Of a stretch of 64,000 nt of DNA, positions 11,252 to 63,250 are shown piece after piece. The translations under genes were made by a program, and so were the position numbers. The notes under the pieces are model-generated. The model did not search any database and was not told the origin of the DNA. It saw only the letters and a program-made list of their open reading frames with translations. Each line of letters starts with the position of its first letter. Position 1 is the stretch's first letter. The stretch lies in contig NIVC01001976.1 of assembly GCA_002269645.1 (NCBI GenBank), positions 124,001 to 188,000 on the forward strand, given 5' to 3'. This stretch comes from Macrostomum lignano. Its lineage: Eukaryota.

Positions 11252-13115
11252 ATGAACGAACAAATCAGTGCTGAGGAGGCTGCCAGCACAGGAAACATCG
11301 AAGCACTCAAACATCATCTGAACCTTCTACGAGGAAGGAACAAAATATATCTTTTTTGCAAACCCGCTTTAACACTTGCTGCGAGCGAGGGTCACTTAGA
11401 AGTCGTGAAGTTTCTCGTGCCAAAAGTCGCTAACAAAGCAAAAAGAGATAAGTGCTGCATCAAGGCAGCCAAATCTGCTGCAAGCAATGGTCAGTTAGAA
11501 GTCGTCAAGTTTCTCGTGCAGACAGCCACTAACAAAAAAAAAGAGATCAGTGCTGCATCGAGGCTGCTGAATCTGCTGCAAGCAATGGTCAGTGGGAAAT
11601 CGTCAAGTTTCTGGAGGCGACAGTCGCTGACCAAATAAAAAGAGATCAGTGCTGCATCAAGGCAGCCAAATCTGCTGCAAGCAATGGTCACTTAGAAGTC
11701 GTCAAGTTTCTTGTGCAGACAGCCGCTGACCAAATAAAAAGAGATCAGTGCTGCATCAAGGCTGCTAAATCTGCTGCAAGCAATGGTCACTTAGAAGCCG
11801 TCAAGTTTCTTGTGCTGACAGTCGCTGACGAAAAAAAAGAGATCAGTGCTGCATCGAGGCTGCTAAATCTGCTGCAAGAAATGGTCACTTAGAGACGGTC
11901 AAGTTTATCGTGCTGACAGTCACTGACAAAAAAAGTAATTATTACTGGATCAAGGCTGCTGAATCTGCTGCAAGAAATGGTCATTTAGAGACGGTGAAGT
12001 TTCTTGTGCTGACAGTCACTGACAAAACAAAAAGTAATTATTACTGGATCCAGGCTGCTGAATCTGCTGCAAGAAATGGTCATTTAGAGACAGTCAAGTT
12101 TCTCGTGACGACAGTCACTGACCAAACAGAAAGAGATGATTGCTGCATCAAGGCTGCTAAACCTGCTGCAATCAATGGTCGCTTAAAAGTCATCAAGTTT
12201 CTCGTGACGACAGTCACTGACCAAACAAAAAGATGATTGCTGCATCAAGGCTGCTAAACCTGCTGCAATCAATGGTCGCTTAAAAGTCGTCAAGTTTCTC
12301 GTGACGACAGTCGCTGACCAAAAAAAAAGAGATGATTGCTGCATCAAGGCTGCTAAACCTGCTGCAATCAATGGTCGCTTAAAAGTCGTCAAGTTTCTCG
12401 TGCCGATAGTCGCTGACCTGACAAAAAGAGATCAGTGCTGCATCGAGGCTGCCAAAACTGCTGCAAGCGAGGGTCAGTGGGAAGTCGTCAAATTATTCAT
12501 CTTGTGTCTCTCAAGTCCGGATCAGAGAGCGAATCTCCGTTTCCAATGCGCAGTCGCGGCTTGCTCTCGTCTTCACGAAGATGTCGTTGCCTCCCTCGGC
12601 CTCGATCCTGACTGGCTCTTCCAATCCAGCTCCATCCTCAGCTTCACTGCAGCAATGGCCATTGAAGGCAAGAACTCTGTTCTCACCGACACCCTCTCTC
12701 GAATGCAACCAGCTCACATCACACAGCTGCTCCGTCTCTCCATCTCTCAAAGACACATTGCTCTTGCTGTCACAATTGCTGTCACACTGATCAATGATGA
12801 GCGAGTCAGCACACAGCATGTCGATCTGCCAGACAGCACTGGAGCCACTGCTCTCATGCTGGCAGCTGATGCAGGTCATCACGAGCTCATTGAGAAACTC
12901 ATCGATCTCGGTGCGTCAGTGCGTGCTGAAGACAGTCAGGGTCGGACTGCTCTGTCACGAGCGTGCGAAGCCGGTCACGTGCGATCAGCCAAGGCTCTGA
13001 TGGACAGAGGAGCGGATGCGAGTCATCGAGACGGTCGGGGTCTGACGTGTGCGCAGGTGGCAGAGCGATTTGAGCAGCGGCAGGTGCAGCGACTGCTGGA
13101 TTTCAGTGAAGCGCG
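11252..13115 (+). pseudogene. ANK-cGLR copy 1, exon 1: 12 ankyrin-like 33-aa repeats, spacer and about 3 canonical ANK repeats; frameshifted as assembled
   Basis: 99-bp periodicity broken by -1 (A run 11534-11542), -1 (A run 11831-11838) and -2 (about 12232). Ends CG|gtgagt, a phase-2 donor. Confidence 0.85.
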
Positions 13116-13712
13116 GTGAGTGAGGCGAGAATTTCGCAAACATCTCTTCAGTATATTTTCATTTTTAGTTAAGCATTTCTGTACTAAAAATGTAGCAAAG
13201 TGGCGCACCGATCGTATTTTCAGTATATTACTATGTGGCGAACACAAGAAAGAAGAACTAGGCGGATTTCTAAGGCAAGGCACGGTCAAAAATGGCGAAT
13301 TGCAACATAAAAAAAGTCAATCAGCCACTCCCTGCGCACAAATGCAGCTGACAGTAGACCGCAGACTTCCTTCCCCGCATTGCAGAAATCTGGAGGTCCG
13401 GCAGGCAGCCGCTCACCATTTGGATTCGGGCCTTCATGGGTGAGTCTGACCGGTTCGGCTTTACCTGCCGCATTGCGCCTTCCAACAGGCTGGCAGCTTG
13501 GGGCAGAAATTGCAGCGAAACTCAGCAGGTTTGAGATTGGGCTGAGCTCTCCTGCTTGAGATGCCAGTCTGAGTGCTGCAGCAGCTGCACTCTCAGCTCT
13601 CCTGCTTGAGGTGCCAGTCTGAGTGCTGCAGCAGCTGCACTCTCAGCTCTCCTGCTTGTTCTGTCCATCCAACTCTGAGCAAATCACCCACATGCATCTC
13701 AAAACATTCCAG

Positions 13713-14074
13713 GCTCTCAGACGACTCCCAGCAAGACATGCGCCTGAGCAAGTGGCTGCATCGACGGCTCAGCGATGCGGGATTCACCGAGCAGAGAGCA
13801 AAGTGTCAGCAGAGACTGGCTGACTGGCTGGAAGGAGTCGCTCGAGTCCTCACGCAGGATGGCAGGCAGATGACGGGCAGCTACGCCGAGGGCTGGGCCA
13901 ACAGTCTGGTGCAAGTGAACGGCAGGACAGCTGCAGACTCGGATATTGACTGGACTGTGCTGGTTGATGGGCAAAAGTTCCATCTGGAAGGTATCTGCAC
14001 AGAATCTTTTCTTTGCAGAGGCGCTACTCGGCTGCAGGTCACGGAGGGCCACGCACAGGTGGCAGTGGGAGCAG
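13713..14074 (+). CDS. ANK-cGLR copy 1, exon 2: nucleotidyltransferase N-lobe (GS and DxD motifs)
   Basis: Acceptor cattccag|G (phase 2); MTGSYAEGWANS...ADSDIDWTVLV; donor GCAG|gtgagt (phase 1). Confidence 0.85.
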
Positions 14075-14681
14075 GTGAGTGAGGCTGGGTTCATCATCAG
14101 AATGCTGAGATTTGCATGCAACTGAAAGCCCATTAACTTTGCTCAATTTTAAATTCCCAACCGAGTGGCGCCCAGCCTCCAGCAGCTTCTGTGACTGCGA
14201 ATGTCGGCTTGGGTGCTGAAATAAGCGGCAGGCGAAATTGAAAAGAAAACTCTGATGCCATCTGGCTGAGCCAGGCCATTGGGTTTTGAATTCACAGGCT
14301 CCGATTGCAGCAGAGTGGGTGCAGCGGTGCTTGGGTGACCCACGGTAGGCGGCATGGCTCTGCTGAGGTGCTGCTGCTCTCACTTGGAGAATTTCAAACA
14401 AAATAAACCGAAGCTGCCCTGACTGCTGATTGGTGCCTTTCTGCGGGGCACTGAGTCCTGATGATGCTTGAGCAGCTGTGCTCAGCTGCAGCCTGATGAA
14501 GCCAGAGCAGCTGAAGCTGAATCTGGGCGAACTCAGTGGGTGCAGAGGCTCATGCCTCACAGGTGCATTTACGAGCTATTTGGCTCTTAAGAGAATTTTA
14601 AAATTTAAATTTAGCAAGTTTCAAACCAACCCATCTTTTTCACTCGCCACAAAGCGACTTTCCGCTCACCGCGCTCTGCAG

Positions 14682-16168
14682 GCAACCAACCTGCAGTGAC
14701 AGCCACGGCGTGCGGTGTGCGGCCTGCACAGGACACGTGCCATGCGATCGAGTGCTGCAGCAGCTTCTGTGAGGACAGAATTAGAAAACTGATTGAAGAC
14801 ACATATATTCCAGTTCACCTCGTTCGGGCGACCAGACCGAGCTCGAACAACGAGCTCAGAGTGAGCTTCAGCTTCCAAGAGAAAGACATCATGAGACGGC
14901 TGAGCACAGTCCAAGGCCAGCTGTTCACACTCATCAAGTTCATCTTCAAGAGACACTTGCCGCTCACTCTGGACACACCTGGACTCAAGACCTACCATGC
15001 AAAGACTCTGCTCTTCACAATGCTGGAGAAGCATGGCACAGATCCTGAAACTGAGGCTTGGAAGCCCGACAATCTGATCGCTCTGCTCAAGGAGTCTCTC
15101 GACATGATGCTGAGCTTCATCGACTCGAGCAGCTCGCCCGATGAGTGCATGCCGCACTTCTTCATGCCCGACGCTCCGCTCTACTTCAAGAACGCTGGAA
15201 TCGGCGGCGACTTCGACAACACGAAGGCGAGGGTTCGAGACCGACTTTGTGAGCTGAGAAGCGACATCGGAGGAGTGGTCGAGCAGCTGAGGAGACTCGT
15301 GAGACCTCTGCAGTCAGAGAAGTTCTACTTTCACCCGTTCACTCTGCTGCCTCTGACAGCGCCGCCTGCTGTCACGGAGATAAGGGACAGTAGATACTAA
15401 ATACTAGAGAAATTCCGGTTCGAATACGTGTACAGTGTGGTGCACCAGTGTGTGGGCGAGCTGCAGTCGGAATCGAGCGACAGAGACACCCTGATGAGGC
15501 AGCTCAGTCTCCTTCGTGAGCTGAAGTGGTGCAAGTGCGCCGCCCTGTGCATGACCGCCATGGCGCATTTGAAGTTCAAGGACGATAAGGAGGCTGGGAG
15601 ACTCGCGATGAAGATGCGGGGACATCAAGTTGAGTCGGGGTTGAAGCCATTGGATATTCGAGATAAGGGTAGATACCAGTTTAGTGAGATAAAACTGCCG
15701 GAAGACTCAGACTGGGCGTGGAGGTTCTGCCTCCCCTGCGACTCTCCGCCTCGCTTCCCATTCCTTCCCGAGTTCACGCAGACTCTGTTCACAGCCAGAC
15801 TGTCGCAGCCTCTCTCCTCCCACCTGTACGTGAACTTCCGCTGCCTGAGCTGGAGTCTCCAAGCTGAGCTGCTCCGCAATCGCGCACCTGCAATCGCATT
15901 CGATCATTGGATTGAACAGCTGCTTGGAGACCCGGACTTGGAGGAGCTGCTCACTCTGGCTCACTACAGCGACTGCCGCGAGCACGTGGAGCTCAGCCTG
16001 CAGCAGATGGAGATGATCGAGAAAGAGAGACGCGTCGCCATGGAGACGCAGGACGAGGAGAAGATCGGCTGGGTCAGGCGGAAGCTGGAGAGACTTGATG
16101 CAGCAGCCGGAGTCCTCAAAAACGAGCCGCAAAGTCGAGGTCGGAAAAGGAAGGCTGAATCAGACTGA
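14682..16168 (+). pseudogene. ANK-cGLR copy 1, exon 3: third catalytic Asp, Mab-21 C-lobe and helical tail; in-frame TAA at 15398-15400
   Basis: Acceptor ctgcag|GC (phase 1); QDTCHAIEC, HLVRAT..ELRVSFSFQEK, LKTYHAKTLLF, CMPHFFMPDAPLYF. Copy 2 has TAT at the TAA codon. Confidence 0.85.
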
Positions 16169-16874
16169 CTACCTGGTGCGGTGCTCGATGCTGACACAAT
16201 TTCATGTACTCTGGGTTTTCAAATCAAACGATGAATGCCGACTTAATGAGGGATCTGCGTGTTCTGCCAATTTCTGTATACTCGTAATTTAGCAACTGAG
16301 ATGCTGCTTTGGTTTGTCTGGAATATTCAGGAAATGAGCACATCGAGAGCCATCGAGTGAGAGCAGCCCTCCTGCTGTGAACTGCAGTTTTGCGCATTTG
16401 TACTGCAATTAAATTCACACTGCATGCTGAATTGCTTTTTCCGTTCAAACTGTGTGTCTGCTTTGATGCGAGCTTTTCTCTGCTATTTTGTTCTGCGGAC
16501 TTCAATACCCAATTGCCAATGCTGTTTATTGAAATATTCAAGCCGCATGTACAGGCTGCAGTTTTCTGTATGAAACTGGAAAATTCGAAGTTCGGCTGGG
16601 TCAGGGAGAAACTGGAGAGACTTGATGCAGCAGCTTGAGTCGAAATCGGAATTTTGTAAGCTTCTCTGGCTTTTTCTCGAGCTGTTTGAGAAATTTTTCT
16701 CTACAAAATACTTTTTTACTCTAAATATTCTCGATGTTTTTTATGGCTTAAAAGTTTGTGTCGGTGCTCTTCGTTATTTTTAAAGTAACTGCTCTCAGAA
16801 TCAGCTCGATCAGTCTGCAAATTGATTTTGTCATGTACTTTCCCCATGTGCTCATGTGCTTAGCAGCAACTGCA

Positions 16875-17822
16875 AGCCTGACAGCTCCCTCATGAACATT
16901 CAGTGACTGACAGCCTGACAGCTCCCTCATGAACATTCAGTGACTGACAGCCTGACAGCTCCTTCATGAACATTTAGTGACTCACAGCCTGACAGCTCCC
17001 TCATGAACATTCAGTGACTGACAGCCTGACAGCTCCCTCATGAACATTCAGTGACTGACAGCCTGACAGCTCCTTCATGAACATTTAGTGACTCACAGCC
17101 TGACAGCTCCCTCATGAACATTCAGTGACTGACAGCCTGACAGCTCCCTCATGAACATTCAGTGACTGACAGCCTGACAGCTCCCTAATGAACATTCAGT
17201 GACTGACAGCCTGACAGCTCCCTCATGAACATTCAGTGACTGACAGCCTGACAGCTCCCTAATGAACATTCAGTGACTGACAGCCTGACATCTCCCTCAT
17301 GAACATTCAGTGACTGACAGCCTGACAGCTCCCTAATGAACATTCAGTGACTGACAGCCTGACAGCTCCCTCATGAGCATTCAGTGACTGACAGCCTGAC
17401 AGCTCCCTCATGAACATTCACTGACTGACAGCCTGACATCTCCCTCATGAACATTCAGTGACTGACAGCCTGGCAGCTCCCTCTTGAACATTCAGTGACT
17501 GACAGCCTGACAGCTCCCTCATGAACATTCAGTGACTGACAGCCTGACAGCTCCCTCATGAACATTCAGTGACTGACAGCCTGACAGCTCCCTCATGAAC
17601 ATTCAGTGACTGACAGCCTGACAGCTCCCTCATGAACATTCAGTGACTGACAGCCTGACAGCTCCCTCATGAACATTCAGTGACTGACAGCCTGACAGCT
17701 CCCTCATGAACATTCAGTGACTGACAGCCTGACAGCTCCCTCATGAACATTCACTGACTGACAGCCTGACATCTCCCTCATGAACATTCAGTGACTGACA
17801 GCCTGACATCTCTTTTATGAAC
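16875..17822. repeat. Spacer satellite A, 37 bp (GACAGCCTGACAGCTCCCTCATGAACATTCAGTGACT), about 25 copies
   Basis: Direct reading; homologues at 38187-38766 and 63955-64000. Confidence 0.95.
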
Positions 17823-18421
17823 ATCAGCTCCGTCATGAAATTTTATTTTGTTTTTTATTTCTGTTTCATATTTGTCAGAAAACGATATGAATGATAAAAT
17901 TCCCTAATGTGTACTTCTGCACTAGAAGGTTTATATTATGTTTACCTGATTGTTACAGTTCGAAAATAGATTTGAAAATAATGGAAGAATTCGTGCATGA
18001 AGTCTCGAAATTTTCGACTTTTGCCCATAATGCTGCCTTTAAAGTGCGGCAAAGAGTTTTTTGGTTAAGGAAACTAAATTTGATTTTTTACGGCGGCACA
18101 ACACGAGGATTGCATTGAATTCCGAATATAATATGATAATGATAAACCAAATCACAGGCAGATCCCTAAAGACAACAATAACACAAAACACATGGAACGC
18201 TGCGGGTCAAAAAAGGTCAGCCAGCACTTCATCAGCCAGCAGGCAGTCGGCAGCACCTCCTGAACTTCCGGCTGTGGGTGGCCACTCAACGCGGATGACT
18301 CGCTCTGAAGCATCTGAAGTGCAGCAGCCAGCGCCGCATCAGGCTGCGGTTCGAACGAGTCCGTCAGAGTCCTGCGCTCGGCGTTGCCAAGGACAGCCCT
18401 CGCAGTTCTTCACGGGCATCG

Positions 18422-19527
18422 GGCGCCACTGACTCATCTGTATTGGCGCCACTGACTCATCTGTATTGGCGCCACTGACTCATCTGTATTGGCGCCACTG
18501 ACTCATCTGTATTGGCGCCACTGACTCATCTGTATTGGCGCCACTGACTCATCTGTATTGGCGCCACTGACTCATCTGTATTGGCGCCACTGACTCATCT
18601 GTATTGGCGCCACTGACTCATCTGTATTGGCGCCACTGACTCATCTGTATTGGCGCCACTGACTCATCTGTATTGGCGCTACTGACTCATCTGTATTGGC
18701 GCCTGCACTGACTCATCTGTATTGGCGCCACTGACTCTTCTGTATTGGCGCTACTAACTCATCTGTATTGGCGCCAATGACTCATCTGTATTGGCGCTAC
18801 TGACTCATCTGTATTGGCGCCACTGACTCATCTGTATTGGCGCCAATGACTCATCTGTATTGGCGCCACTGACTCATCTGTATTGGCGCCAATGACTCAT
18901 CTGTATTGGCGCCAATGACTCATCTGTATTGGCGCCACTGACTCATCTGTATTGGCGCCACTGACTCATCTGTATTGGCGCCACTGACTCATCTGTATCA
19001 GCGCCACTGACTCATCTGTATTAGCGCTACTGATCTGTATTGGCGCCACTGACTCATCTGTATTGGCGCCAATGACTCATCTGTATTGGCGCCTGCACTG
19101 ACTCATCTGTATTGGCGCCACTGACTCATCTGTATTGGCGCCTGCACTGACTCATCTGTATTGGCGCCACTGACTCTTCTGTATTGGCGCTACTGACTCA
19201 TCTGTATTGGCGCCACTGACTCTTCTGTATTGGCGCTACTAACTCATCTGTATTGGCGCCAATGACTCATCTGTATTGGCGCCAATGACTCATCTGTATT
19301 GGCGCCACTGACTCATCTGTATTGGCGCCACTGACTCATCTGTATTGGCGCCACTGACTCATCTGTATTGGCGCCACTGACTCATCTGTATTGGCGCCAC
19401 TGAGTCATCTGTATTGGCGCCAATGACTCATCTGTATTGGCGCCAATGACTCATCTGTATTGGCGCCAATGACTCATCTGTATTGGCGCCACTGACTCAT
19501 CTGTATTGGCGCCAATGACTCATCTGC
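18422..19527. repeat. Spacer satellite B, 23 bp (CACTGACTCATCTGTATTGGCGC), about 48 copies
   Basis: Direct reading; each monomer contains TGACTCA and ATTGG. Confidence 0.95.
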
Positions 19528-21284: not shown

Positions 21285-22197
21285 ATAATTATAGACATAT
21301 TTGATTAGCAATCCATGAACTTCCTAAGCAGCCGGTTTTACTTGTTGGAAATAAACAATTCAAATGCTTTCCCAGAGCGCCATAAGTGACTGCAGCTACC
21401 CAATGAACACAGCTTCTCCTTCCCGATTACAGCAGTGAGGCATTGCAATATCAGCACAGAATGGGCCATGGCTGATGAAGCAATGGCAGTCACTGATGCA
21501 GCACTAAAGGGCCAGCAAATGCACATAATAGCTGATGCTGGGCCAGCATTGATACTCACAGCAACTGAACTCAAATAATGGCATTTTTACACTAACTGTG
21601 CTCAGAAGTATTCTGTCTCAGTTCTCGCTCATACACACAATCACGCAGGGTGCACAGCGGCCCGGACTGTCTAATCCTCAGGCGTACACGAACTGCAACT
21701 CCATCAATATTTAGTCACTACTGACTACTGCTTTTTAGATTGTTAGTAGTAGGTAAGGAGAATGCTCAGCATAATTATTATTTAATAACTTTATATTATG
21801 ATGCGAGGTGTATTGACAAAAATAATAAAACATCTTCATGCACGGGCGTGGAGGTTCCGCCTCTCCTGCGACTCTCCGCCTCGCTTCTCATTCCTTCCCG
21901 AGTTCACGCAGACTCTGCTCTCGTGAGATGCCACTCAGCTGTGGCAAATCCAGACGGTTGTCGGCATGTCGACCAGGTGAAGCCTTGGCGGTCTAAACGA
22001 CTAAAGGCTGGGGATTCCAGCTGCGTGTTTGTTGCATCAAGCTCCGGGTTTTCTGATTGGTCGAGCCCGGGATGACCAGCTCGACTCTGATTGGCTGAGC
22101 TCGAAACTCTGAAATCCTCTCGACCTTTGAGACCCCATTGGACTTGGCAGGTGCGAGCATAAATCATAAAAATGGGTAAGGCTAGCCAACAAGGTGA

Positions 22198-23278
22198 AAG
22201 GTAGGTGATCATATATAAACTGTGACAGGTAGGTGATCATATATCTAATGTGACAGGTAGGTGATCATATATCAAATGTGACAGGTAGGTGATCATATAT
22301 CAAATGTGACAGGTAGGTGATCATATATCGACAGATAAGCCACTCAACAAAAGTAGATACCACAGAAACCATTGACTCCTATTGACCCCATTGACCCCAT
22401 TGACCCCATTGACCCCATCGACCTCATTGACCCCGTTGACCCCATCGACCTCATTGACCCCGTTGACCCCATTGATCCCATTGACCCCATTGAGCCCCTT
22501 AGAGTGAATCTTCAATGAGTGAGTCACCAATGTGGCCTCAGCTCACAGTCACCAATGAGTGAGTCACCAATGTGGCCTCAGCTCACAGTCACCAATGAGT
22601 GAGTCACCAATCTGGCCTCAGCTCACAGTCACCAATGAGTGAGTCACCAATCTGGCCTCAGCTCACAGTCACCAATGAGTGAGTCACCAATCTGGCCTCA
22701 GCTCACAGTCACCAATGAGTGAGTCACCAATCTGGCCTCAGCTCACTCCAGTGCGCCAATTCCAGGGCGCCAATAGGGCGCCAATGCCAGGCCGCAGTGC
22801 AGGGGCAGCAGCAAAAGGGCGCCAATGCCAGGCCGCAATGCAGGGGCAGCAGCAAAAGGGCGCCAATGCCAGGCCGCAATGCAGGGGCAGCAGGAAAAGG
22901 GCGCCAATGCCAGGCCACAGTGAAGGGGCAGCAGGAAAAGGGCGCCAATGCCAGGCCACAGTGAAGGGGCAGCAGGAAAAGGGCGCCAATGCCAGGCCGC
23001 AGTGCAGGGGCAGCAGCAAAAGGGCGCCAATGCCAGGCCGCAATGCAGGGGCAGCAGCAAAAGGGCGCCAATGCCAGGCCGCAATGCAGAGGCAGCAGCA
23101 AAAGGGCGCCAATGCCAGGCCGCAATGCAGGGGCAGCAGCAAAAGGGCGCCAATGCCAGGCCGCAATGCAGGGGCAGCAGCAAAAGGGCGCCAATGCCAG
23201 GCCGCAATGCAGGGGCAGCAGGAAAAGGGCGCCAATGCCAGGCCGCAATGCAGGGGCAGCAGGAGAAGGGCGCCATGG
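22198..23278. repeat. Abutting spacer satellites E (28 bp, 22198-22329), F (9 bp TTGACCCCA, 22371-22497), G (40 bp, 22514-22748) and H (41 bp GC-rich, 22763-23278)
   Basis: Direct reading; same order at 42695-43643. Confidence 0.92.
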
Positions 23279-26658: not shown

Positions 26659-28232
26659 ATGAGCGAACAAATCAGTGCCGATGAGGCCGCCAAGACAGGA
26701 AATATCCAGGCACTCCAACATCATCTGAACCTTCAGCATGGAAGAAACGAAATATATGTTTTTTGCAAAACAGCTTCAAGACTTGCTGCAAGCGAGGGTC
26801 ACTTAGAAGTCGTGAAGTTTCTCGTGCCAAAAGTCGCTAACAAAGCAAAAAGAGATAAGTGCTGCATCGAGGCTGCTGAATCTGCTGCAAGAAATCGTCA
26901 ATGGGAAGTCGTCAAGTTTCTCGTGCCGACAGTCGCTGACCAGACAAAAAGAGATCAGTGCTGCATCCAGGCTGCTAAATCTGCTGCAAGAAATGGTAAC
27001 TTACAAGTTGTCAACTTTCTCGTGCCAAAAGTCGCTAACAAAACAAAAAGAGATCAGTGCTGCATCAAAGCTGCTGACTCTGCTGCAAAAAGTGGTCAGT
27101 GGGAAGTCGTCAAGTTTCTTGTGTCGACAGTCAAAGACAAAAGAAAAAGAGATCAGTGCTACATCGAGGCTGCTGAATCTGCTGCAAGAAATCGTCAATG
27201 GGAAGTCGTCAAGTTTCTCGTGCCGAAAGTCGCTAACCAGACAAAAAGAGATCAGTGCTGCATCCAGGCTGCTAAATCTGCTGCAAGAAATGGTAACTTA
27301 CAAGTTGTCAACTTTCTCGTGCCAAAAGTCGCTAACAAAACAAAAAGAGATCAGTGCTGCATCGAGGCTGCTGAAACAGCTGTAATCCGGGGTCAGTGGA
27401 AAGTCCTCAAGTTTCTCGTGCCAAAAGTCGCTAACAAAACAAAAAGAGATCAGTGCTGCATCGAGGCTGCTGAAACAGCTGTAATCCGGGGTCAGTGGAA
27501 AGTCCTCAAGTTTCTCGTGAAACAAGTCGCTGACCAAGCAAAAAGAGATCACTGCTGCATCGAGGCTGCTGACTCTGCTGCAAGCAATGGTCAGTTAGAA
27601 GTCATCAAGTTCCTCATCACGTGTCTCTCAAGTCCGGATCAAAAAGCGCAGCTCCGTTTCCAATGCGCAGTCCCGGCTTGCTCTCGTCTTCGCGAAGATG
27701 TCGTTGCCTCCCTCGGCCTCGAGCCCGACTGGCTCTTCCAATCCAGCACCATTCTCAGCTTCACTGCAGCAATGGCCATCGAAGGCAGGAACTCTGTTCT
27801 CACCGACACCCTCTCTCGAATGCAGCCAGCTCGCATCACACAGCTGCTCCGTCTCTCCATCTCTCAAAGACACATTGCTCTTGCTGTCACAATTGCTGTC
27901 ACACTGATCAATGATGAGCGAGTCAGCACAGAGCATGTCGATCTGCCAGACAGCACTGGAGCCACTGCTCTCATGCTGGCAGCTGATGCAGGTCATCACG
28001 AGCTCATTGAGAAACTCATCGATCTCGGTGCGTCAGTGCGTGCTGAAGACAGTCAGGGTCGGACTGCTCTGTCACGAGCGTGCGAAGCCGGTCACGTGCG
28101 AGCAGTCAAGGCTCTGATGGACAGAGGAGCGGATGCGAGTCATCGAGACGGTCGGGGTCAGACGTGTGCGCAGGTGGCAGAGCGATTTGAGCAGCGGCAG
28201 GTGCTGCGGCTGCTTGATCCCAGTGGAGCGGG
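26659..28232 (+). CDS. ANK-cGLR copy 2, exon 1 (9 variable ankyrin-like repeats, spacer, canonical ANK repeats); intact
   Basis: Open from ATG 26659; DSTGATALMLAADAGHHELIEKLIDLGA canonical ANK; GG|gtgagt phase-2 donor. Join 26659-28232, 29646-30007, 36060-37723 = 3600 nt (1199 aa plus stop). Confidence 0.9.
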
Positions 28233-28851
28233 GTGAGTGAGGCGAGAATTTTGCAAATCTTTTTAGTATTGGATATCATATCCTGCTCTAGTAAAGCATT
28301 TTTATTATGTTCGTTGGAATTCTTGGTAAATAGGCTTAAAACAAAAATATTTTAAAGGATATTCGGGGTTAAGCAACGAAGTAGTGAACTCAAGGACGAG
28401 AGATGAAGTGAGACAGAGTGAGATGAGAAAAAAGACAAGAGACAAGACGGAAGGCGCAGAAACTAAGAAGTTGCTTTTTTAAGTTTCTGATGAGTGAAGA
28501 AATAATATTAGTGTCCATGCGAGGAAAGGCTGCTTTCGGTCATCCGCTTCTACCTGCTCTCCCTCCTCCTTTTACCTTAAAAAACGTTGGAAATGGATGA
28601 TGCTGCAAAAAATCTAGAAATGTGTGGCGCAAAACATTTTAAAATGGTGAGAACTGCTGTGAGAACCCTCGCTTTCCTTCCTGCATTGCAGAAGCCCAGA
28701 GGCCCGGCAGGCAGCCGCTCACCCCTTGGATTCGGGCCTCCATCGGTGAGTCTGACCGGTTCGGCTTTCACTGCCGCATTGCACCTTCCAACATGCTGGC
28801 AGCTTGGGGAAAAAATTCCAGCGAAACTCAGCAGGGTTGAGATGGGTTGGA

Positions 28852-29590: not shown

Positions 29591-29645
29591 GTTCTGTCCA
29601 TCCAACTCTGAGCAAGTCACCCACACGCATCTCGGATCATTCCAG

Positions 29646-43643: not shown

Positions 43644-46600
43644 TGGCTGCGGTGCAGAGGCTGCATTTGAGCGCCGGTCCTCAGCGGCTGTCCTGGCGGG
43701 GTCGCCAGAAGGGCAGCTCAAAACTTCAGTGCTTCCTCAGCTCAGCCCAGTGGATTCGCCCCTGCTGCAAAATGGCTGAGTGCCGCACTGCTCAAACTCA
43801 AACTGCTGCAGGATGGTGGAAGCAAGAGGAGAGCAAATGCTGTGTGTGGCAGGTGGGCGAGCGGTCAGCCCTGGCAACACGGGAGACATAGGAGCGGTCA
43901 GAACAAAAAAGTGTTCTGCATCACAAATTTTCATGGTTGGGTTTTATAACATAGTGAAAATATTTTCTTTGAAACTTCCCCTACCATAAACACTGAGCTC
44001 GTGCTCAGTTTCCACTGAAACTCAGTTGTGTTATGTAGTATTGTGAGCAGACAGTCAGCTGCCTCCGCCAATATTTACAAGCTGCTCTTTGGAAACGAAC
44101 CGGCCTGGGCCGCCTAAGCCTTCCACGTCTGCTGCGCTCCCCGCGGCCAGCTTATCCATTGTTTTGGGGTGGACCAGAGGTTCCGCTTTCCAATGTGCGT
44201 TTCAGCCCCACTTCTGCCAGTACGCAGCCAAGTTCTACTCAATTGTCTGAGGGTAGGGATTACCTGCAGTTGCCCTGTCAGCCATCCGGATGTACGGGAA
44301 TGAATTTCTGTGACGGCTGCGTAAGCTCCGTTTCCCTCCCGGCCTTCCCTCCAGCTCTCCCCTGCATTGTTTGGTCTTCCTACCTCTGACCCTCTGTCTC
44401 TTCATTTCATCTCAAGTACCGTGTTTGCTTGCTGCAGAGCCTCCTGTCTGCTTTTGCAAGTTCCGCCTTCTCTGCAAACTGCGAGTCTCTGCCTGCCGCT
44501 CCATCTGCAGATTGACGAGTTCAAAATCATAACTGGCAATCGGTGAGTCCTTCTCTGCCCTGCTTCAGTCTGCTGGGCTGGCATTGAAGTGAGCTGTCAG
44601 TTAGGCTTGCGATTAGGCTGGGAAAATGTGCTGACGCCCCCGGCGCTAACGAAGCCGTCACAGCCTCACAGTCACTTCAATATGGGGCCGGATGATTAGC
44701 AGAAGCTGACTGACCATCTCACATTCTTACAGATAACTGATAACCCAATTAACTGTTTAAATTGGTGCCACTTGAAACAACAGCGATTATAACAAAGGAT
44801 AATAATAATTAGAGACACGCAGACGATATACTACTGCCAGTAGGGTGAGGCGTCACTTTGAACAGCCGGTCAGGTCGCTTGTAAATATGAATAAAAAACA
44901 GAGCTGGCAGTGGGAGAAGCCCGGACCGGTGCGGCAGGCTTTGAGACTCGCCGCACAGCAGGGGGCCGGCAGGTTGCATTTCTAACAGGCAACAGCACAC
45001 TGTAACACCCTGATTCTGTGATATTGTGCATGACTGTCGATTTGTCGACGGTATTGTCTGTGTCTGCTGTCTACAACTGGATGATATTGTATTTTTCGAG
45101 CCATTAAATTTCTTCTCAGTCCTCAAAACGAGGACTCAGAAACGATAGGTTGAGGACTCAGAAAGAAACGATTTTAGGACTTAAACGATTCAATCGTCTC
45201 ATACGAGTAGAAGCAAGATGAATACAAATGTGCAACAACGAGGCAAAAAGTAGTTAAAAGTGGAAAACAATTGTCCAAAAGTTCATCACATTAAGAGCGT
45301 ATTAACTCTGTAAATGTAGACAGTCACTCCCATGCAACAGCTGAATTAAAGCATTGCACTTGCTCCCATCCTGTTTGCGCTTTTCGAAAAAGAATCGCCT
45401 CAGAAGATATTTCCAACTGCCTCGACTCGGTTCTTCAATCGGTTTGGAGACAAGTGCTTTGGTTTCACCTTGCTAATCTGTGCAATCTCATGAGGTCACA
45501 CAAATTGTTAAGATGAGGAGCCAGCACTGAATGTATGACTCTGACTGACTCTCTATGCTAGTCTGGCCAAAATGAGATGGCCATATGCGTTTCCAACCCT
45601 CTTCTCCTGCCAATGCGCTGTCAAATTGTACTCATTGGTGTGCGGGCAGGGCCTTCTTTCCTGTGCTCTGTGCTTGCACCATCAGCCCTCCTGTCGTGCG
45701 GGAATGACTTTCTGTGACGGCTTTGTACGCTCGTTTCGACAAGCGCTCACTCTGCTGTGCATTTCTGTGCTTTGCTTGACTTTTGGCTTGCCATTCTCTT
45801 CCAGATTGCTTTCCAACCAGCGTTCAATACCTCTGTAGCAGCCCACCATAATTTATTTGGTCTCTTATTTTTCCACAAGTACCGTGTTTGGTTATTGCAG
45901 AGCGCCCTTTCTGCTTTTGAGAGTTGTGCTTTCTCTGCGAGTCTCTGCTGCCAGAAGCCTTGCGAGTTCAGAACTGGCCATCGGTGAGTCCTGCACTGCC
46001 CTGCTGCAGTCTGCTGTGTTGGCGTTGGAGTAAGCTGTCGATTTCCCACTCACTGAATCCTTTACTCTAAATTCACAGACTGGCTTCTCCTTCTGTTCTC
46101 CCTCCTTCTTCCCCTCTTCTTTCCCCTGTTTTTCTCGCTCCCCTCTTTTTCCCTCGAGTTCAGGTTTACTCTGGGCTGAGACCTGACCACTGTGACTACT
46201 TACACTGCTCAGTAGGAGAGATTTTAAGATCTCAGACTGCACTGAGGCCCAATGGGTCAGCTCAGCCTCATCAAGTACAGCTTGGCGTGGCCGCTGCAAC
46301 CGCAGACTCTCCGTTGCCATGCTGGGTGCACAGAGGCGAAGGCGGCGACTCAGCGCTCATGCTCGGGAGAGAAGTTTCGGCTGCTCAGGCCGGGGTGGTC
46401 GGCCTCGCATGAGACTACAGAGTGTGGGCAGCTGAGAGACTTTGGCAACCTGCTGCACAAACGTTTGAAATGCATGCCTCTCTGACTGCAGCCGTGACTG
46501 ACATCTGCCACTCTGACAACATCTAGGAATCATTAGGTATTCCCTTCACAAGTCTTCAAAATCACGACGCCACCCTTTTTCTCTCTGACCGTTTCTCTAA

Positions 46601-46683: not shown

Positions 46684-49641
46684 ATGAGCCAACAAATCAG
46701 TGCCGATGAGGCCGCCAAGACAGGAAATATCCAGGCACTCAAACATCATCTGGACCTTCAGAGAGAAACAAACAGGATATATCTTTTTTGCAAAAGCTAT
46801 TCTAAACTTGCCGCAAGAAAGGGTCAGTTAGACGTGGTCAAGTTTCTCGTGTCTAAAGTCACTGACCAAACAAACAGAGATCAGTGCTGCATCGAGGCTG
46901 CAGAATCTGCTGCATACAATGATCAGTGGAAAGTCATCAAGTTTCTCGTGCCTGAAGTCGCTGACCAAACAAAAAGAGATCAGTGCTGCATCGAGGCTGC
47001 CACATCTGCTGCATACAATGGTCAGTTAGAAGTGGTCAAGTTTCTCGTGCCGAAAGTCGCTGACCAAACAAAAAGAGATCAGTGCTGCATCAAGGCTGCC
47101 AAATCTGCTGCATACAATAGTCAGTTAGAACTGGTCAAGTTTCTCGTGCCGAAAGTCGCTGACCAAACAAAAAGAGATCAGTGCTGCATCGAGGCTGCCA
47201 AATCTGCTGCAGTCGAGGGTCACTTAGAAGTCGTCAAGTTTCTCGTGCCGACAGTCGCTGACCCAACAAAAAGAGATCAGTGCTGCATCGAGGCTGCAGA
47301 ATCTGCTGCTGACAATGATCAGTGGGGAGTCGTCAAGTTTCTCGTGCCGACAGTCGCTGACCAAACAAAAAGAGATCAGTGCTGCATCGAAGCTGCCACA
47401 TCTGCTGCATACAATGATCACTGGGAAGTCGTTAAGTTTCTCGTGTGGATAGTCGCTGACCAGACAAAAAGAGATCAGTGCTGCATCGAGGCTGCCAAAT
47501 CTGCTGCATACAATGGTCAGTTAAAAGTGGTCAAGTTTCTCGTGCCGAAAGTCGCTGACCAAACAAAAAGAGATCAGTGCTGCATCGAGGCTGCCAAATC
47601 TGCTGCAGTCGAGGGTCACTTAGAAGTCGTCAAGTTTCTCGTGCCGACAGTCGCTGACCCAACAAAAAGAGATCAGTGCTGCATCGAGGCTGCAGAATCT
47701 GCTGCTGACAATGATCAGTGGGAGTCGTCAAGTTTCTCGTGCGACAGTCGCTGACCAAACAAAAAGAGATCAGTGCTGCATCGAAGCTGCCACATCTGCT
47801 GCATACAATGATCACTGGGAAGTCGTTAAGTTTCTCGTGTGGATAGTCGCTGACCAGACAAAAAGAGATCAGTGCTGCATCGAGGCTGCCAAATCTGCTG
47901 CATACAATGGTCAGTTAAAAGTGGTCAAGTTTCTCGTGCCGAAAGTCGCTGACCAAACAAAAAGAGATCAGTGCTGCATCAAGGCTGCAATATCTGCTGC
48001 AGTCAAGGGTCACTTAGAAGTCGTCAAGTTTCTCGTAGCGATAGTCGCTAACCAGACAAAAAGAGATCAGTGCTGCATCGAGGCTGCAAAATCTGCTGCA
48101 TACAATGGTCAGTTAGAAGTGGTCAAGTTTCTCGTGCCGAAAGTCGCTGACCAAACAAAAAGAGATCAGTGCTGCATCAAGGCTGCAATATCTGCTGCAG
48201 TCAAGGGTCACTTAGAAGTCGTCAAGTTTCTCGTGGCGATAGTCGCTGACCAAACAAAAAGAGATCAGTGCTGCATCGAGGCTGCAGAATGTGCTGCATA
48301 CAATGGTCAGTTAGAAGTGGTCAAGTTTCTCGTGCCGAAAGTCGCTGACCAAACAAAGAGAGATCAGTGCTGCACCGAGGCTGCAAAATGTGCTGCATAC
48401 AATGGTCACTTAGAAGTCGTCAAGTTTCTCGTGCCGAAAGTCGCTGACCAAACAAAAAGAGATCAGTGCTGCATCAAGGCTGCCAAATCTGCTGCAAGAA
48501 ATGGTCAGTGGGAATTCGTTAAGTTTCTCGTGCCGACAGTCGCTGACCAAACAAAAAGAGATCAGTGCTGCATCGAGGCTGCCAAATCTGCTGCATACAA
48601 TAGTCAGTTAGAACTGGTCAAGTTTCTCGTGCCGAAAGTCGCTGACCAAACAAAAAGAGATCAGTGCTGCATCGAGGCTGCCAAATCTGCTGCAGTCGAG
48701 GGTCACTTAGAAGTCGTCAAGTTTCTCGTGCCGACAGTCGCTGACCCAACAAAAAGAGATCAGTGCTGCATCGAGGCTGCAGAATCTGCTGCTGACAATG
48801 ATCAGTGGGGAGTCGTTAAGTTTCTCGTGCCGACAGTCGCTGACCAAACAAAAAGAGATCAGTGCTGCATCAAGGCTGCCAAATCTGCTGCTGACAATTA
48901 TAAGTGGGAAGTCGTTAAGTTTCTCGTGCCGATAGTCGCTGACCTGACAAAAAGAGATCAGTGCTGCATCGAGGCTGCCAAAACTGCTGCAAGCGAGGGT
49001 CAGTGGGAAGTCGTCAAGTTACTCATCTTGTGTCTCTCAAGTTCGGATAAGAGAGCGAATCTCCGTTTCCAATACGCAGTCCCGGCTTGCTCTCGTCTCC
49101 GCGAAGATGTCGTTGCCTCCCTCGGCCTTGAGCCCGACTGGCTCTTCCAATCCAGCACCATCCTCAGCTTTACTGCAGCAATGGCCATCGAAGGCAGGAA
49201 CTCTGTTCTCAACGACACACTCTCTCGTATGCAGCCAGCTCACATCACACAGCTGCTCCGTCTCTCCATCTCTCAAAGACACGTCGCACATGCTGTCGCA
49301 ATTGCTGTCACACTGATCAATGATGAGCGAGTCAGCACACAGCATGTCGATCTGCCAGACAGCACTGGAGCCACTGCTCTCATGCTGGCAGCTGATGCAG
49401 GTCATCACGAGCTCATTGAGAAACTCATCGATCTCGGTGCGTCAGTGTGTGCTGAAGACAGTCAGGGTCGGACTGCTCTGTCACGAGCGTGCGAAGCCGG
49501 TCACGTGCGAGCAGCCAAGGCTCTGAAGGACGGAGGAGCGGATGCGAGTCATCGAGACGGTCAGGGTCAGACGTGTGCGCAGGTGGCAGAGCGATTCGAG
49601 CGGTGGCAGGTGCTGCGGCTGCTGGATCCCATTGGAGCGGG
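46684..49641 (+). CDS. ANK-cGLR copy 3, exon 1 (23 variable ankyrin-like repeats); two 1-nt deletions at about 47721 and 47742 as assembled
   Basis: Strict 99-bp period; GG|gtgagt phase-2 donor. Restoring 2 nt gives a 4812-nt joined CDS (1603 aa). Confidence 0.85.
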
Positions 49642-49646
49642 GTGAG

Positions 49647-50397: not shown

Positions 50398-51283
50398 GCA
50401 ATAATCCTTGGTTTATCAAGTGCAGTAATCCTTGGTTCATCAAGTGCAGTAATTCTTGGTTCATCAAGTGCAGTAATTCTTGGTTTATCAAGTGCAGTAA
50501 TCCTTGGTTTATCAAGTGCAGTTCCTTGGTTTATCAAGTGCAATAATCCTTGTTTCATCAAGTGCAGTAATCCTTGGTTCATCAAGTGCAGTAATCCTTG
50601 GTTTATCAAGTGCAGTAATCCTTGGTTTATCAAGTGCAATAATCCTTGGTTTATCAAGTGCATTAATCCTTGGTTTATCAAGTGCAGTAATCCTTGGTTT
50701 ATCAAGTGCAATAATCCTTGGTTTATCAAGTGCAATAATCCTTGGTTTATCAAGTGCAGTAATCCTTGGTTTATCAAGTGCAGTAATCCTTGTTTCATCA
50801 AGTGCAGTAATCCTTGGTTCATCAAGTGCAGTAATCCTTGGTTTATCAAGTGCAATAATCCTTGGTTCATCAAGTGCAGTAATCCTTTGTTTATCAAGTG
50901 CAGTAATCCTTTGTTCATCAAGTGCAGTAATCCTTGTTTCATCAAGTGCAGTAATCCTTGGTTCATCAAGTGCAGTAATCCTTGGTTTATCAAGTGCAGT
51001 AATCCTTGTTTCATCAAGTGCAGTAATCCTTGGTTCATCAAGTGCAGTAATCCTTGGTTTATCAAGTGCAGTAATCCTTGTTTCATCAAGTGCAGTAATC
51101 CTTGGTTCATCAAGTGCAGTAATCCTTGGTTTATCAAGTGCAGTAATCCTTGGTTTATCAAGTGCAATAATCCTTGGTTTATCAAGTGCAGTAATCCTTG
51201 GTTTATCAAGTGCAGTAATCCTTGGTTCATCAAGTGCAGTAATCCTCGGTTTATCAAGTGCAGTAATCCTTGGTTTAGCAAGT
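50398..51283. repeat. 24-bp minisatellite ATCAAGTGCAGTAATCCTTGGTTT, about 37 copies
   Basis: Direct reading; source of the SNPWFIKC and GLLHLINQ ORFs. Confidence 0.95.
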
Positions 51284-54806: not shown

Positions 54807-55461
54807 GTGCTGAACCATTGCTAAACTGCTGGTAAACCATTGCTAAACTGCTGGTAAACAAATTGCTAAAGTGGTGATGAACCATTGCTAAACTGCTGGT
54901 GAACCATTGCTAAACTGCTGGTGAACCATTGCTAAACTGCTGGTGAACCATTGCTAAACTGCTGGTGAAGCATTGCTAAACTGCTGGTAAACCATTGCTA
55001 AACTGCTGGTGAACCATTGCTAAACTGCTGGTGAACCATTGCTAAACTGCTGGTGAACCATTGCTAAACTGGTGGTGAGCCATTGCTAAACTGGTGGTGA
55101 GCCATTGCTAAACTGCTGGTAAACCATTGCTAAACTGCTGGTGAACCATTGCTAAACTGCTGGTGAACCATTGCTAAACTGGTGGTGAACCATTGCTAAA
55201 CTGGTGGTGAGCCATTGCTAAACTGGTGGTGAGCCATTGCTAAACTGGTGGTGAACCATTGCTAAACTGGTGGTGAACCATTGCTAAACTGCTGGTGAAC
55301 CATTGCTAAACTGCTGGTGAAGCATTGCTAAACTGCTGGTAAACCATTGCTAAACTGCTGGTGAACCATTGCTAAACTGCTGGTGAACCATTGCTAAACT
55401 GCTGGTGAACCATTGCTAACCTGCTGGTAAACAAATTGCTAAAGTGGTGATGAACCATTCC
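54807..55461. repeat. 22-bp minisatellite AACCATTGCTAAACTGCTGGTG, about 29 copies
   Basis: Direct reading. Confidence 0.95.
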
Positions 55462-57130: not shown

Positions 57131-58037
57131 TAGGTTGTTGAGCGATTGTCAGATCGTCAAGTAGTACGGCTCAAGTAGCTCATTTAATTCAGATAATGAA
57201 ATAGTACACACAAGTGATTCTGAATTCTGCTGATAGGAAATACCAGCGTGTTTATTAAAGGTTTGATTCTTTGAGTTAGGCTAATAAAGAGGGGGTCAAA
57301 GGCCGTCAGGGATTGACATATTGAGCTCCTGTTACGGACCAGAATATGCCCAGGCCAATGACGATATGCTCTAAGATTTTGTGCTTGAAAGGATAAGCAC
57401 TATTTGCTGATTGAAAAAGGGTTTTGGGCTGATGAAGGAAACTATTTTGCTGGTAAAAGTTTTGATTCATAGCAATTTATTTTTTTTCAAAATGAGAAAA
57501 ATTAATTTTTGATTAATGGAAATGAAAATTAATGGTTACTGTTGGGCCAAAACAAAAACCACTTGGTGTCATTTTAAAGCCCCTCAGCGGGGAGCTAAAT
57601 GGCTAGTCCATCCAATATACTAAAACTAAAGTCTCAAATCTCCGGCCCAGCAAGCGAGCTTCTCCTTCAATCTGCGGAATTCACTCGCTCTTGGCTCGAC
57701 TCTCTTTCTCATTGATACTTCTACCTTAAAGAGCGTTGGAAATTGATGAAGCTGCAGATGAAGATTAATTTTTAAATCAATCAAGAAATATGTGGCGCAA
57801 AAAACATTGTAAATCCTCACTGCTGTGAGAACCCTGGCTTTCCTTTCCGCATTTCAGAAGCCCAGAGGCCCGGCAGGCAGCCGCTCACGGCTTGGATTCG
57901 GGCCTCCATCGGTGAGTCTGACGGTTCGGCTTTCTGCCGCATTGCGCCTTCCAACAGGCTGGCAGCTTGGGGCAGAAATTGCAGCGAAACTCAGCAGGGT
58001 TGAGATTGGGTTGGACTGAGTGCTGCAGCAGCTGCAC

Positions 58038-58495: not shown

Positions 58496-58552
<57 letters not shown>

Positions 58553-58710: not shown

Positions 58711-59075
58711 GCTCTCAGACGACTCCCAGCAAGACAGGCGCTTGAGCTTTGAGCTGCATCAACTGCTCAGCAATGCGGGATTCACCGAGCAGAGAGCAAA
58801 GCGTCAGCAGATGCTGGCTGACTGGCTGCAACATGTCGCTCAAGTCCTCACACAGGATCGCAGGCAGATGACGGGCAGCTACGCAGAGGGCTGGGCCAAC
58901 AGTCTGGTGCAAGTGAACGGCAGGACAGCTGCAGACTCGGACATTGACTGGACTGTGCTGGTTGCTGGGCAAGAGTTCCATTTGGAGGGTGGCTGCTATA
59001 AATTGTATGGTTCCTGCCAAAACGCCACTCGGCTGCAGGTCACGGAGGGCCACGCTCAGGTGGCAGTGGGAGCAG
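58711..59075 (+). CDS. ANK-cGLR copy 3, exon 2 (NTase GS/DxD)
   Basis: tcattccag|G acceptor; MTGSYAEGWANS...DSDIDW; GCAG|gtgagt donor; 365 nt (one extra codon). Confidence 0.88.
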
Positions 59076-61290: not shown

Positions 61291-61763
61291 AGCCCAGCCC
61301 GACTCTGACCAGCTCCGCCAGCAACCGGTGACCCACCAGGTCGTGCCGGAGCCCAGCCCAGGACTTTTTTTGCGTTTTCTCTTTTTATTGGGGGTAACAA
61401 AAGTACGAATAGTTACTTATCTAAACAGGTGTTAAGCGATCGAATAAATGGTCGAATGAATGACAGAGCTTTGAAACTACGCGCTTGTATTAAGTTTTCT
61501 TATCAAGTCTTTAAGTCCAATTCAATATTTTTCATGATTGCATGCCGGGTTGCTGCTTAAAAATATGAAAATTGGGTGGAAACTTCTACCTTTTGGCCTT
61601 TTAGGTTTGAAAGGAGAGTAAATTTAATTTAACTGTCGAATCATCAGAACTGTATAGCAGCTGAGAGAAAATATTGTTGTTTTAAATGATATTTCATTGG
61701 ATTCAAACCAACCCATCCTTTTCACTCGTCACAAAGCGACTCTCCGCTCACTGCGCCCTGCAG

Positions 61764-63250
61764 GCAGCCAACCTGCAGTGACAGCCACGGCGTGCGGTGT
61801 GCGGCCTGCACAGGACACGTGCTATGCCATTCGGTGCTGCAGAATTTTCTATGTGGACAGAATTAGAAAACAGACGGTAAACAGTGATGGGAAAATTCAC
61901 CTCGTTCGGGCGACCAGACCGAGCTCGACCAACGAGCTCAGAGTGAGCTTCAGCTTCCAAGAGAAACACATCATGAGACAGCTGAGCACAGTCCAGGGCC
62001 AGCTGTTCACACTCATCAAGTTCATCTTCAAGAGACACTTGCCGCTCACTCTGGACACACCTGGACTCAAGACCTACCATGCAAAGACTCTGCTCTTCAC
62101 AATGCTGGAGAAGCATGGCACAGATCCCGAAACTGAGGCTTGGCAGCCCCACAATCTGATCGCTCTGCTCAAGGAGTCTCTCGACATGATGCTGAGCTTC
62201 ATCGACTCGAGCAGCTCGCCCGATGAGTGCATGCCGCACTTCTTCATGCCCGACGCTCCGCTCTACTTCAAGAACGCTGGAATCGGCGGCGACTTCGACA
62301 ACACGAAGGCGAGGGTTCGAGACCGACTTTGTGAGCTAAGAAGCGACATCGGCGGAGTGGTCGAGCAGCTGAGGAGTCTCGTGAGACCTCTGCAGTCAGA
62401 GAATTTCTACTTTCACCCGTTCACTCTGCTGCCTCTGACAGCGCCGCCTGCTGTCACGAAGATCAGGAAAGGACGTGACTATCCAGCTAGGTACTACAAG
62501 TTCGCAGACGTGTACAGTGTGGTGCACCAGTGTGTGAGCGAGCTGCAGTCGGAATCGAGCGACAGAGACACCCTGATGAGGCAGCTCAGTCTCCTTCGTG
62601 AGCTGAAGTGGTGCAAGTGCGCCGCCCTGTGCATGACCGCCATGGCGCATTTGAAGTTCAAGGACGATAAGGAGGCTGGGAGACTCGCGATGAAGATGCG
62701 GGGACATCAAGTTGAGTCGGGGTTGAAGCCATTGGATATTCGAGATAAGGGTAGATACCAGTTTAGTGAGATAAAACTGCCGGAAGACTCAGACTGGGCG
62801 TGGAGGTTCTGCCTCCCCTGCGACTCTCCGCCTCGCTTCCCATTCCTTCCCGAGTTCACGCAGACTCTGTTCACAGCCAGACTGTCGCAGCCTCTCTCCT
62901 CCCACCTGTACGTGAACTTCCGCTGCCTGAGCTGGAGTCTCCAAGCTGAGCTGCTCCGCAATCGCGCACCTGCAATCGCATTCGATCATTGGATTGAACA
63001 GCTGCTTGGAGACCCGGACTTGGAGGAGCTGCTCACTCTGGCTCACTACAGCGACTGCCGCGAGCACGTTGAGCTCAGCCTGCAGCAGATGGAGATGATC
63101 GAGAAAGAGAGACGCGTCGCCATGGAGACGCAGGACGAGGAGAAGATCGGCTGGGTCAGGCGGAAGCTGGAGAGACTTGATGCAGCAGCCGGAGTCCTCA
63201 AAAACGAGCCGCAAAGTCGAGGTCGGAAAAGGAAGGCTGAATCAGACTGA
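61764..63250 (+). CDS. ANK-cGLR copy 3, exon 3 (catalytic Asp, Mab-21 C-lobe, helical tail); intact
   Basis: ccctgcag|GC phase-1 acceptor; QDTCYAIRC, SFSFQEKHIM, LKTYHAKTLLF; 1487 nt, same length as copy 1. Confidence 0.9.

Follow-up and report, generated by a model that had tools for sequence, protein, structure and literature searches.

A tandem cluster of ankyrin-fused cGAS-like receptor genes with one intact, transcript-supported copy in Macrostomum lignano

In this study, we analysed a 64,000-nucleotide stretch of the genome of the flatworm Macrostomum lignano (contig NIVC01001976.1 of assembly GCA_002269645.1, positions 124,001 to 188,000; hereafter the window), which carries a tandem cluster of genes joining ankyrin (ANK) repeats to a nucleotidyltransferase (NTase) of the cGAS-like receptor (cGLR) type. 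Self-BLAST of the window resolved three tandem units of ~20 kb each, starting near 11.2, 26.6, and 46.6 kb. By tblastn, each unit holds, on the + strand, one exon each for the ANK, NTase, and Mab-21 parts. Copy 2 is the presumed functional gene, and its protein comprises an ANK solenoid, a short linker, a predicted NTase of the cGAS/Mab-21 fold, and a family-specific helical/beta C-terminal domain with a basic tail. We favour, with moderate confidence, a recent tandem triplication (synonymous divergence, dS, ~0.06-0.15) that arose from a single gene of a large ankyrin-fused cGLR family specific to Macrostomum; for its product we propose the role of a ligand-regulated enzyme.

Structure and transcript support of the second copy

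Copy 2 corresponds to the GenBank protein PAA62074.1 (P0037; BOX15_Mlig034155g1), a 1217-aa product of contig NIVC01001976.1, to which it is 100% identical. PAA62074.1 maps exactly onto the exons of copy 2, four of which are coding. Exon 1 (ANK; 26659-28232, +, with GT at 28233) encodes residues 1-525 and matches Pfam Ank_2 with E=1e-44. It contains the start codon and ~9 degenerate 33-aa 'KRDxCC...VVKFLV' units, as well as a degenerate stretch resembling ANK and 2-3 canonical ANK repeats. An in-frame micro-exon of 54 nt with AG/GT flanks (28692-28745, +) is present in PAA62074.1 and encodes the 18 aa SPEARQAAAHPLDSGLHR. The NTase exon (29646-30007, +; AG at 29644-45, GT at 30008-09) encodes the spine helix, strand beta-1, and the G-S and D-I-D elements, with the G-S codons at 29809-29814 and the Asp codons at 29875-29877 and 29881-29883. 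The last exon (36060-37723, +; AG at 36058-59) encodes the third catalytic Asp (36110-36112), the Mab-21_C helical lobe (Pfam E=1.5e-5), the C-terminal domain of ~230 aa, the basic tail, and the stop codon. This exon also has ~198 extra coding nt (37439-37635) that are absent in copies 1 and 3 and common to the C-terminus of PAA68676.1.

The original prediction, made from the letters of the window, had read the ANK, NTase, and Mab-21 open reading frames (ORFs) as exons of one gene. Both the RNA-seq-based PAA62074.1 and the exon plans of paralogs bear this out. The junctions it named were exact: GT follows 28232 and 30007, AG precedes 29646 and 36060, and the intron phases are 2 and then 1, with intron lengths of 0.6-9 kb across the copies. 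Its 3600-nt join of 26659-28232, 29646-30007, and 36060-37723 indeed ends in a single terminal stop, but it missed the 54-nt micro-exon, so that the product has 1217 aa and not 1199. Since the length of the micro-exon is a multiple of three, its omission left the phase argument undisturbed. An alignment showed that the micro-exon and its splice sites are kept in all three copies (13386-13439, 28692-28745, and 57858-57911).

The source of the Mlig_3_7 GenBank annotation is a genome-guided RNA-seq transcriptome made with StringTie, TACO, and TBONE (PMC5730564). Because the annotation is derived from RNA-seq, the ANK and Mab-21 parts are joined on one mRNA model, and the link between them rests on transcript evidence. 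The coding sequence of copy 2 is intact over 3.65 kb and transcript-supported. The exon order of ANK, optional micro-exon, NTase, and rest is common to the paralogs P0011, P0017, and P0001, and the introns of P0011 and P0017 are only 70-350 nt long. These results indicate that the fusion is not an artefact of the gene model. For the same reason, we rejected the possibility that ANK and Mab-21 are neighbouring genes merged by the annotation.

Enzyme fold, gene family, and ankyrin arrays

The catalytic elements lie at G598-S599 (TGS), D620-x-D622 (D620-I-D622-W), and D681 (Q-D681-T) in the numbering of PAA62074.1; the third Asp, D681, was assigned by its motif and strand position, not from superposed coordinates. 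As originally predicted, alignments showed GS, DSDID, and QDTC[HY]AI in all three copies, and these elements are also conserved in paralogs at dS ~1. At this distance, paralogs still differ very little in the block GSYAEGWANSLVQVNGRTAADSDIDW. Among the Pfam families suggested as a check, Ank_2 and Mab-21_C were matched; the Mab-21_C score on the last exon (25.5 bits) is just above the cut-off of 24.1.

An AlphaFold model of the 576-aa enzyme and C-terminal part, built with 30 paralogs, reached a mean predicted local distance difference test score (pLDDT) of 85.3 and a predicted template modelling score (pTM) of 0.87. As the original prediction had anticipated, the top Foldseek matches to this model in the PDB were all cGAS, with probability 1.0, E ~4e-7, and template modelling (TM) scores of 0.52-0.55 normalised to the target. 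They were followed by the coral Sp-cGLR1 (8gjy) and human MAB21L1 (5eog). In the predicted model, the active-site motifs fall on the expected strands: G-S directly follows strand 50-54, strand 77-84 opens with D-I-D, and Q-D-T lies within strand 136-144. A comparison by hhalign with a small cGAS/cGLR profile alignment gave a probability of 98.3%, and the Mab-21 signature motifs RVSFS..EK, TYHAKT, and HFFMPD align to cGAS. In PDB searches by sequence, the profile of the full alignment was dominated by ankyrin, and the single sequence gave weak cGAS matches (E ~0.09). Together, the model and the motifs support the assignment of the copy 2 protein as a predicted NTase of the cGAS/Mab-21 fold with a full set of catalytic motifs.

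The family-specific C-terminal domain of ~230 aa (36716-37426 in copy 2, with equivalents in copies 1 and 3) is acidic, with an isoelectric point (pI) of 4.8. Its model is confident (pLDDT 82.8) and consists of helical hairpins and a small sheet. It had no match in Pfam and no significant Foldseek match in the PDB, the best being TPR-like at E 0.84. A basic tail, RGRKRKAESD, closes every copy and is similar to a nuclear localisation signal; basic character is also seen in the ANK part (pI 9.2).

The family is strongly expanded in M. lignano. An exhaustive search gave 162 cluster representatives at E<=1e-3 and 63 at E<=1e-30. Ten representatives were looked up, and all were M. lignano proteins save one metagenome fragment. 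The best matches to the enzyme part of copy 2 were M. lignano proteins only, and most family members carry ANK repeats. The closest paralog, PAA68676.1 (= P0001), shares its exon plan with copy 2, and the two show 84% identity across the enzyme and C-terminal part. Against the distant paralog P0017, the ratio of nonsynonymous to synonymous divergence (dN/dS) was 0.24-0.32, which indicates long-term constraint by purifying selection.

A sister lineage, P0041/PAA59752.1 (contig NIVC01002235.1), has a cGLR-like module and C-terminal domain, then ANK, and then a caspase (Peptidase_C14). PAA59752.1 is one compact gene with introns of 73-102 nt, and a second caspase-fused member is PAA80948.1 (1444 aa). 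In P0041, DxD is replaced by D-M-N, and no third Asp is found where the alignment would place it; the change from DxD suggests that its NTase is probably inactive. Some members (P0029 and P0017) have hydrophobic, transmembrane or membrane-anchor-like C-terminal segments; in P0029, ANK repeats and the acidic DxD are missing as well.

The ANK-cGLR architecture, which the original prediction did not know as a described system, has already been catalogued, and the locus is not a new kind of system. Li et al. (2023) catalogued ~3000 animal cGLRs, some of which carry TPR or ankyrin modules (Fig. 1C and S2A), and ANK-cGLR fusions including M. lignano proteins are among them (PMC9980059). In Table S2 of that study, Ank_2 domains are listed for several M. 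lignano cGLRs (PMC9980059). PAA62074.1 was not found in the available portions of the tables (PMC9980059). In the published literature, we found no dedicated study of Macrostomum Mab-21, cGAS, or STING, or of ANK-cGLR function.

The number of ANK units varies by copy, as originally stated, with ~12 in copy 1, ~9 in copy 2, and ~23 in copy 3. The arrays have a 99-nt periodicity, and small indels aside, they differ in length by whole multiples of 99 nt; the copy 3 array also contains higher-order duplications of 396 nt. Most units lack the TPLH motif and have KRDxCC instead. Across 27-29 in-frame 33-aa units, the framework KRDQCC..AA.SAA....VVKFLV is invariant and variation falls mainly at unit positions 15, 28, 11, 16, and 17, with the highest entropy at 15, 28, 11, and 16 (canonical 13, 26, 9, and 14). 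By alignment of the AAxNGxLEVVKxL core, unit positions 15, 16, and 28 equal canonical ANK positions 13, 14, and 26, all located on the face through which binding usually occurs. The ratio of nonsynonymous to synonymous differences (pN/pS) was 1.39 at the variable positions vs. 0.29 elsewhere; since the variable set was picked post hoc and the units are non-independent, being related by recent duplication, the contrast is a hint rather than a test. The data are thus suggestive of a diversifying ANK surface.

The original prediction had also described a near-invariant enzyme attached to the variable repeats. This did not hold. The local copies share 81-88% protein identity at dS 0.06-0.15, and dN/dS was 0.45-1.1 in every region, the enzyme included. 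These results indicate that the enzyme is not near-invariant and that its divergence does not set it apart, as a conserved effector, from a variable C-terminal part of the ANK region.

Damaged copies and the setting of the cluster

Of the three copies, only copy 2 proved intact. In copy 1, the ANK exon (11252-13115, +) has ~12 degenerate units, as judged from tblastn frames, stop maps, and repeat-unit lengths. Its reading frame changes three times (2>1>3>1), and units of 100, 98, and 97 nt reveal the indels. The micro-exon (13386-13439, +) was placed by alignment with copy 2 and is used in the annotated product P0015. The NTase exon (13713-14074, +; P0015 residues 190-310) retains GS and DSDID, and the last exon (14682-16168, +) carries a premature stop codon, with TAA at 15398-15400 instead of the TAT of copy 2. 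P0015 (548 aa) begins inside the ANK exon and ends at this TAA, and the span of the annotation suggests that copy 1 is transcribed but truncated. Copy 1 is thus a transcribed pseudogene or a truncated form.

The ANK exon of copy 3 (46684-49641, +; alternative ATG at 47711) has ~23 units and matches Pfam Ank_2 with E=1e-57. Its length equals that of copy 2 plus 14x99 minus 2 nt. Two 1-nt deletions lie ~20 nt apart, near 47723 and 47742 (net -2), in two 98-nt units that are each short of one base in a short homopolymer. They split the exon into two ORFs in different frames, 46684-47754 and 47711-49645. All remaining exons of copy 3 keep an open frame: the micro-exon (57858-57911, +; alignment), the NTase exon (58711-59075, +; tblastn 82% identity), which has one extra codon and retains GS and DSDID, and the last exon (61764-63250, +; ORF 61697-63250). 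An annotated GenBank product of copy 3 was looked for and not found. The assembly was made from PacBio reads with Canu, polished with short reads using Pilon, and is known to be redundant (PMC5730564). Given such an assembly and highly repetitive arrays, the deletions could be assembly errors. The ANK array of copy 3 is therefore either frameshifted, and thus broken, or mis-assembled.

Self-BLAST further showed that 14620-16920 in copy 1 and 61702-64000 in copy 3, which cover the last exon's 3' half together with its downstream flank, are 96.5% identical. The same 3' half is only ~90% identical to that of copy 2 in either case. At the level of sequence, this identity indicates a gene conversion-like pattern or a nested duplication history. 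Relics of the C-terminal domain, 24-26 aa long and 81-88% identical, were observed in the spacers at 21846-21923 (after copy 1) and 42341-42412 (after copy 2). These relics suggest that part of an older copy travelled within the unit that was duplicated.

The last intron of copy 2 contains a Ty3/gypsy-type long terminal repeat (LTR) retrotransposon (30569-35906, -). The element is young, and its 170-nt direct repeats (30569-30738 and 35737-35906) are 99% identical. The zf-CCHC and aspartyl protease domains (gag/protease), RVT_1/RNase H, and rve (integrase) lie in three separate overlapping ORFs. Insertion of this element accounts for the 6-kb length of the intron, and intron lengths differ between the copies because of insertions.

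Self-comparison showed that the tandem units are rich in minisatellites. Arrays with periods of ~20-60 nt account for a large share of the introns and spacers and yield spurious ORFs in several frames. They were located at 2431-3034, 5393-6130, 6862-8292, 16869-17827, 18418-19526, 22513-23275, 28852-29591, 39471-40426, 43106-43645, 50398-51283, and 54807-55459; the first intron of copy 2 includes a 50-nt minisatellite array. Long ORFs at 22.7-23.6, 43.0-43.9, and 50.1-51.5 kb were considered as genes and rejected, since several frames are open in the minisatellites that contain them. Upstream of the cluster, beside minisatellites, an ORF at 3098-3883 (-) has weak matches to seven-transmembrane receptors of the rhodopsin and serpentine types (Pfam 7tm_1 and Srd, E ~1e-4).

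Competing explanations and comparison with known systems

For the triplicated, ligand-regulated enzyme that we favour, the following mechanism is proposed. The enzyme would produce a nucleotide second messenger, such as a cyclic di- or oligonucleotide. Its activity may be held back up to the point at which a partner binds to the ANK array, and perhaps to the C-terminal domain as well; this partner would more likely be a protein than a nucleic acid. The number of repeats could shift by unequal crossing-over within the 99-nt array. An immune role, as suggested in the original prediction, is likewise a hypothesis. A wider and rather doubtful extension is that the Macrostomum ANK-cGLRs may form a germline-encoded, fast-turnover repertoire for sensing proteins. 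Specificity would then come from a few hypervariable positions and from repeat number, changed by unequal crossing-over in tandem clusters. The nucleotide messenger would pass to a non-canonical receptor, in a phylum regarded as having lost cGAS-STING, and in the sister genes a caspase would be coupled directly to the same sensor module.

Several observations weigh against a ligand-regulated, messenger-producing enzyme under diversification. The Pfam model of the N-terminal Mab-21 part (PF03281) did not match the NTase exon, which is where the Pfam check of the original prediction failed, and the global hhalign alignment sets the cGAS Asp three residues downstream of D681. The KRDQCC positions of the ANK units, which correspond to the beta-turn, are invariant, and these positions normally form a major binding surface. 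The local dN/dS of 0.45-1.1, together with two damaged copies, fits relaxed constraint equally well as adaptive change. The published record bears on the enzyme in the same direction. In the screen of Li et al., five M. lignano constructs were included (nos. 89-93), among them PAA93208.1 (no. 92) and PAA68676.1 (no. 93), both trimmed to the enzyme part, so that only ANK-deleted constructs were assayed; none of the five, which comprised the NTase part only, is noted as 'active' in Table S3, where 15 enzymes are active (PMC9980059). The sequence given there for construct no. 92 corresponds to P0011 in its enzyme part. Wu et al. (2014) reported that flatworms had lost cGAS and STING, based on Schistosoma (PMC4117786). 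Li et al. stated that most platyhelminths lack cGLRs beyond Mab21-like proteins, and their Table S5 omits Macrostomum (PMC9980059). In our STING-seeded searches, which were dominated by vertebrate sequences and of limited sensitivity, no M. lignano protein was among the best 120 matches listed.

A rival explanation is that the protein is a catalytically inactive scaffold. Its cGAS-like module would provide a platform for structure or for ligand binding only, as has been proposed for MAB21L1/2, partners would be recruited by the ANK repeats, and no messenger would be made. The absence of M. lignano constructs from the active enzymes of Li et al. (PMC9980059) fits such a scaffold, as does the presence of MAB21L1 among the structural matches. 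In addition, the D-M-N motif and the lost third Asp of P0041 show that the family tolerates loss of catalysis. However, copy 2 and most paralogs strictly retain GS, DxD, and the third Asp, and GSYAEGWANSLVQVNGRTAADSDIDW stays near-identical at dS ~1, whereas MAB21L1/2 lack those catalytic residues according to Li et al. (PMC9980059). We consider the scaffold unlikely, though it deserves weight. An output other than a cyclic messenger was also considered, namely linear 2'-5' oligonucleotides as made by OAS, or nucleotidylation of an ANK-bound protein, in a process that may be nuclear and does not sense pathogens. STING has not been demonstrated in flatworms (PMC4117786), which would suit such an output. 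The nuclear localisation signal-like tail and the basic ANK part also point this way. The Pol-beta NTase fold is common to OAS and other transferases, and so the fold itself is compatible with other products. The best structural and profile matches are nevertheless cGAS and cGLRs, and the Mab-21 signature motifs align to cGAS; we regard this alternative as highly improbable.

The cluster might instead be genomic debris. It would then be a recent segmental duplication whose extra copies are decaying, and the ANK lengths would reflect neutral slippage, unequal crossing-over, or assembly error rather than a diversifying set of receptors. The three frameshifts and the nonsense codon of copy 1, the net loss of 2 nt in copy 3, and a dN/dS near 0.7 everywhere among the copies agree with decay. 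So do the minisatellites and the LTR element with which the units are packed, and the redundant, Pilon-polished PacBio assembly of a repeat-rich, partly duplicated genome (PMC5730564). Against this stand the intact and transcript-supported coding sequence of copy 2, the purifying selection on the family overall, and the confinement of the nonsynonymous excess to a few repeat positions within a conserved framework. We judge it quite unlikely that debris accounts for the locus.

Macrostomum, a transgenic laboratory model, is a free-living flatworm from an early branch, and flatworms are usually described as lacking cGAS-STING. Despite this reputed loss, Macrostomum carries dozens of cGLR genes, most of them ankyrin-fused. 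The locus offers an intact, transcript-supported, full-length gene and two natural variants that differ in array length. A C-terminal domain without a structural relative and the caspase-fused sister genes are further assets. These are starting points for asking whether cGLRs can act as protein-ligand receptors. They bear on a question left by the 2023 catalogue, which assayed only ANK-deleted constructs, namely what ANK- or TPR-fused cGLRs sense (PMC9980059).

The closest known relatives of copy 2 are the ANK-cGLRs of Li et al., which come from the same species and family and have the same ANK and cGLR architecture. Tandem clusters, variation in repeat number, the C-terminal domain, and pseudogenised copies are not described in that catalogue. 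Among proteins of solved structure, cGAS, Drosophila cGLR1, and Stylophora Sp-cGLR1 share the bilobed Mab-21/cGAS fold predicted for copy 2 and the G-S, [DE]x[DE], and [DE] elements. The copy 2 protein is 12-17% identical to them, shows no evidence of a zinc thumb, and has an N-terminal ANK solenoid and a 230-aa C-terminal domain beyond what they contain. MAB21L1 and MAB21L2 have the same fold and the same Pfam Mab-21_C domain as copy 2. They have no predicted functional active site according to Li et al. (PMC9980059), whereas the catalytic acidic triad of copy 2 is present and conserved. The NLR proteins with LRR and the lamprey VLR, which the original prediction had invoked, are comparable by functional analogy only. 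They are alike in combining a solenoid of variable length with a conserved signalling module and in their large germline expansion. In contrast, the copy 2 family uses ANK and not LRR repeats, has no NACHT or NB-ARC domain, shows no evidence of somatic assembly, and varies at few positions.

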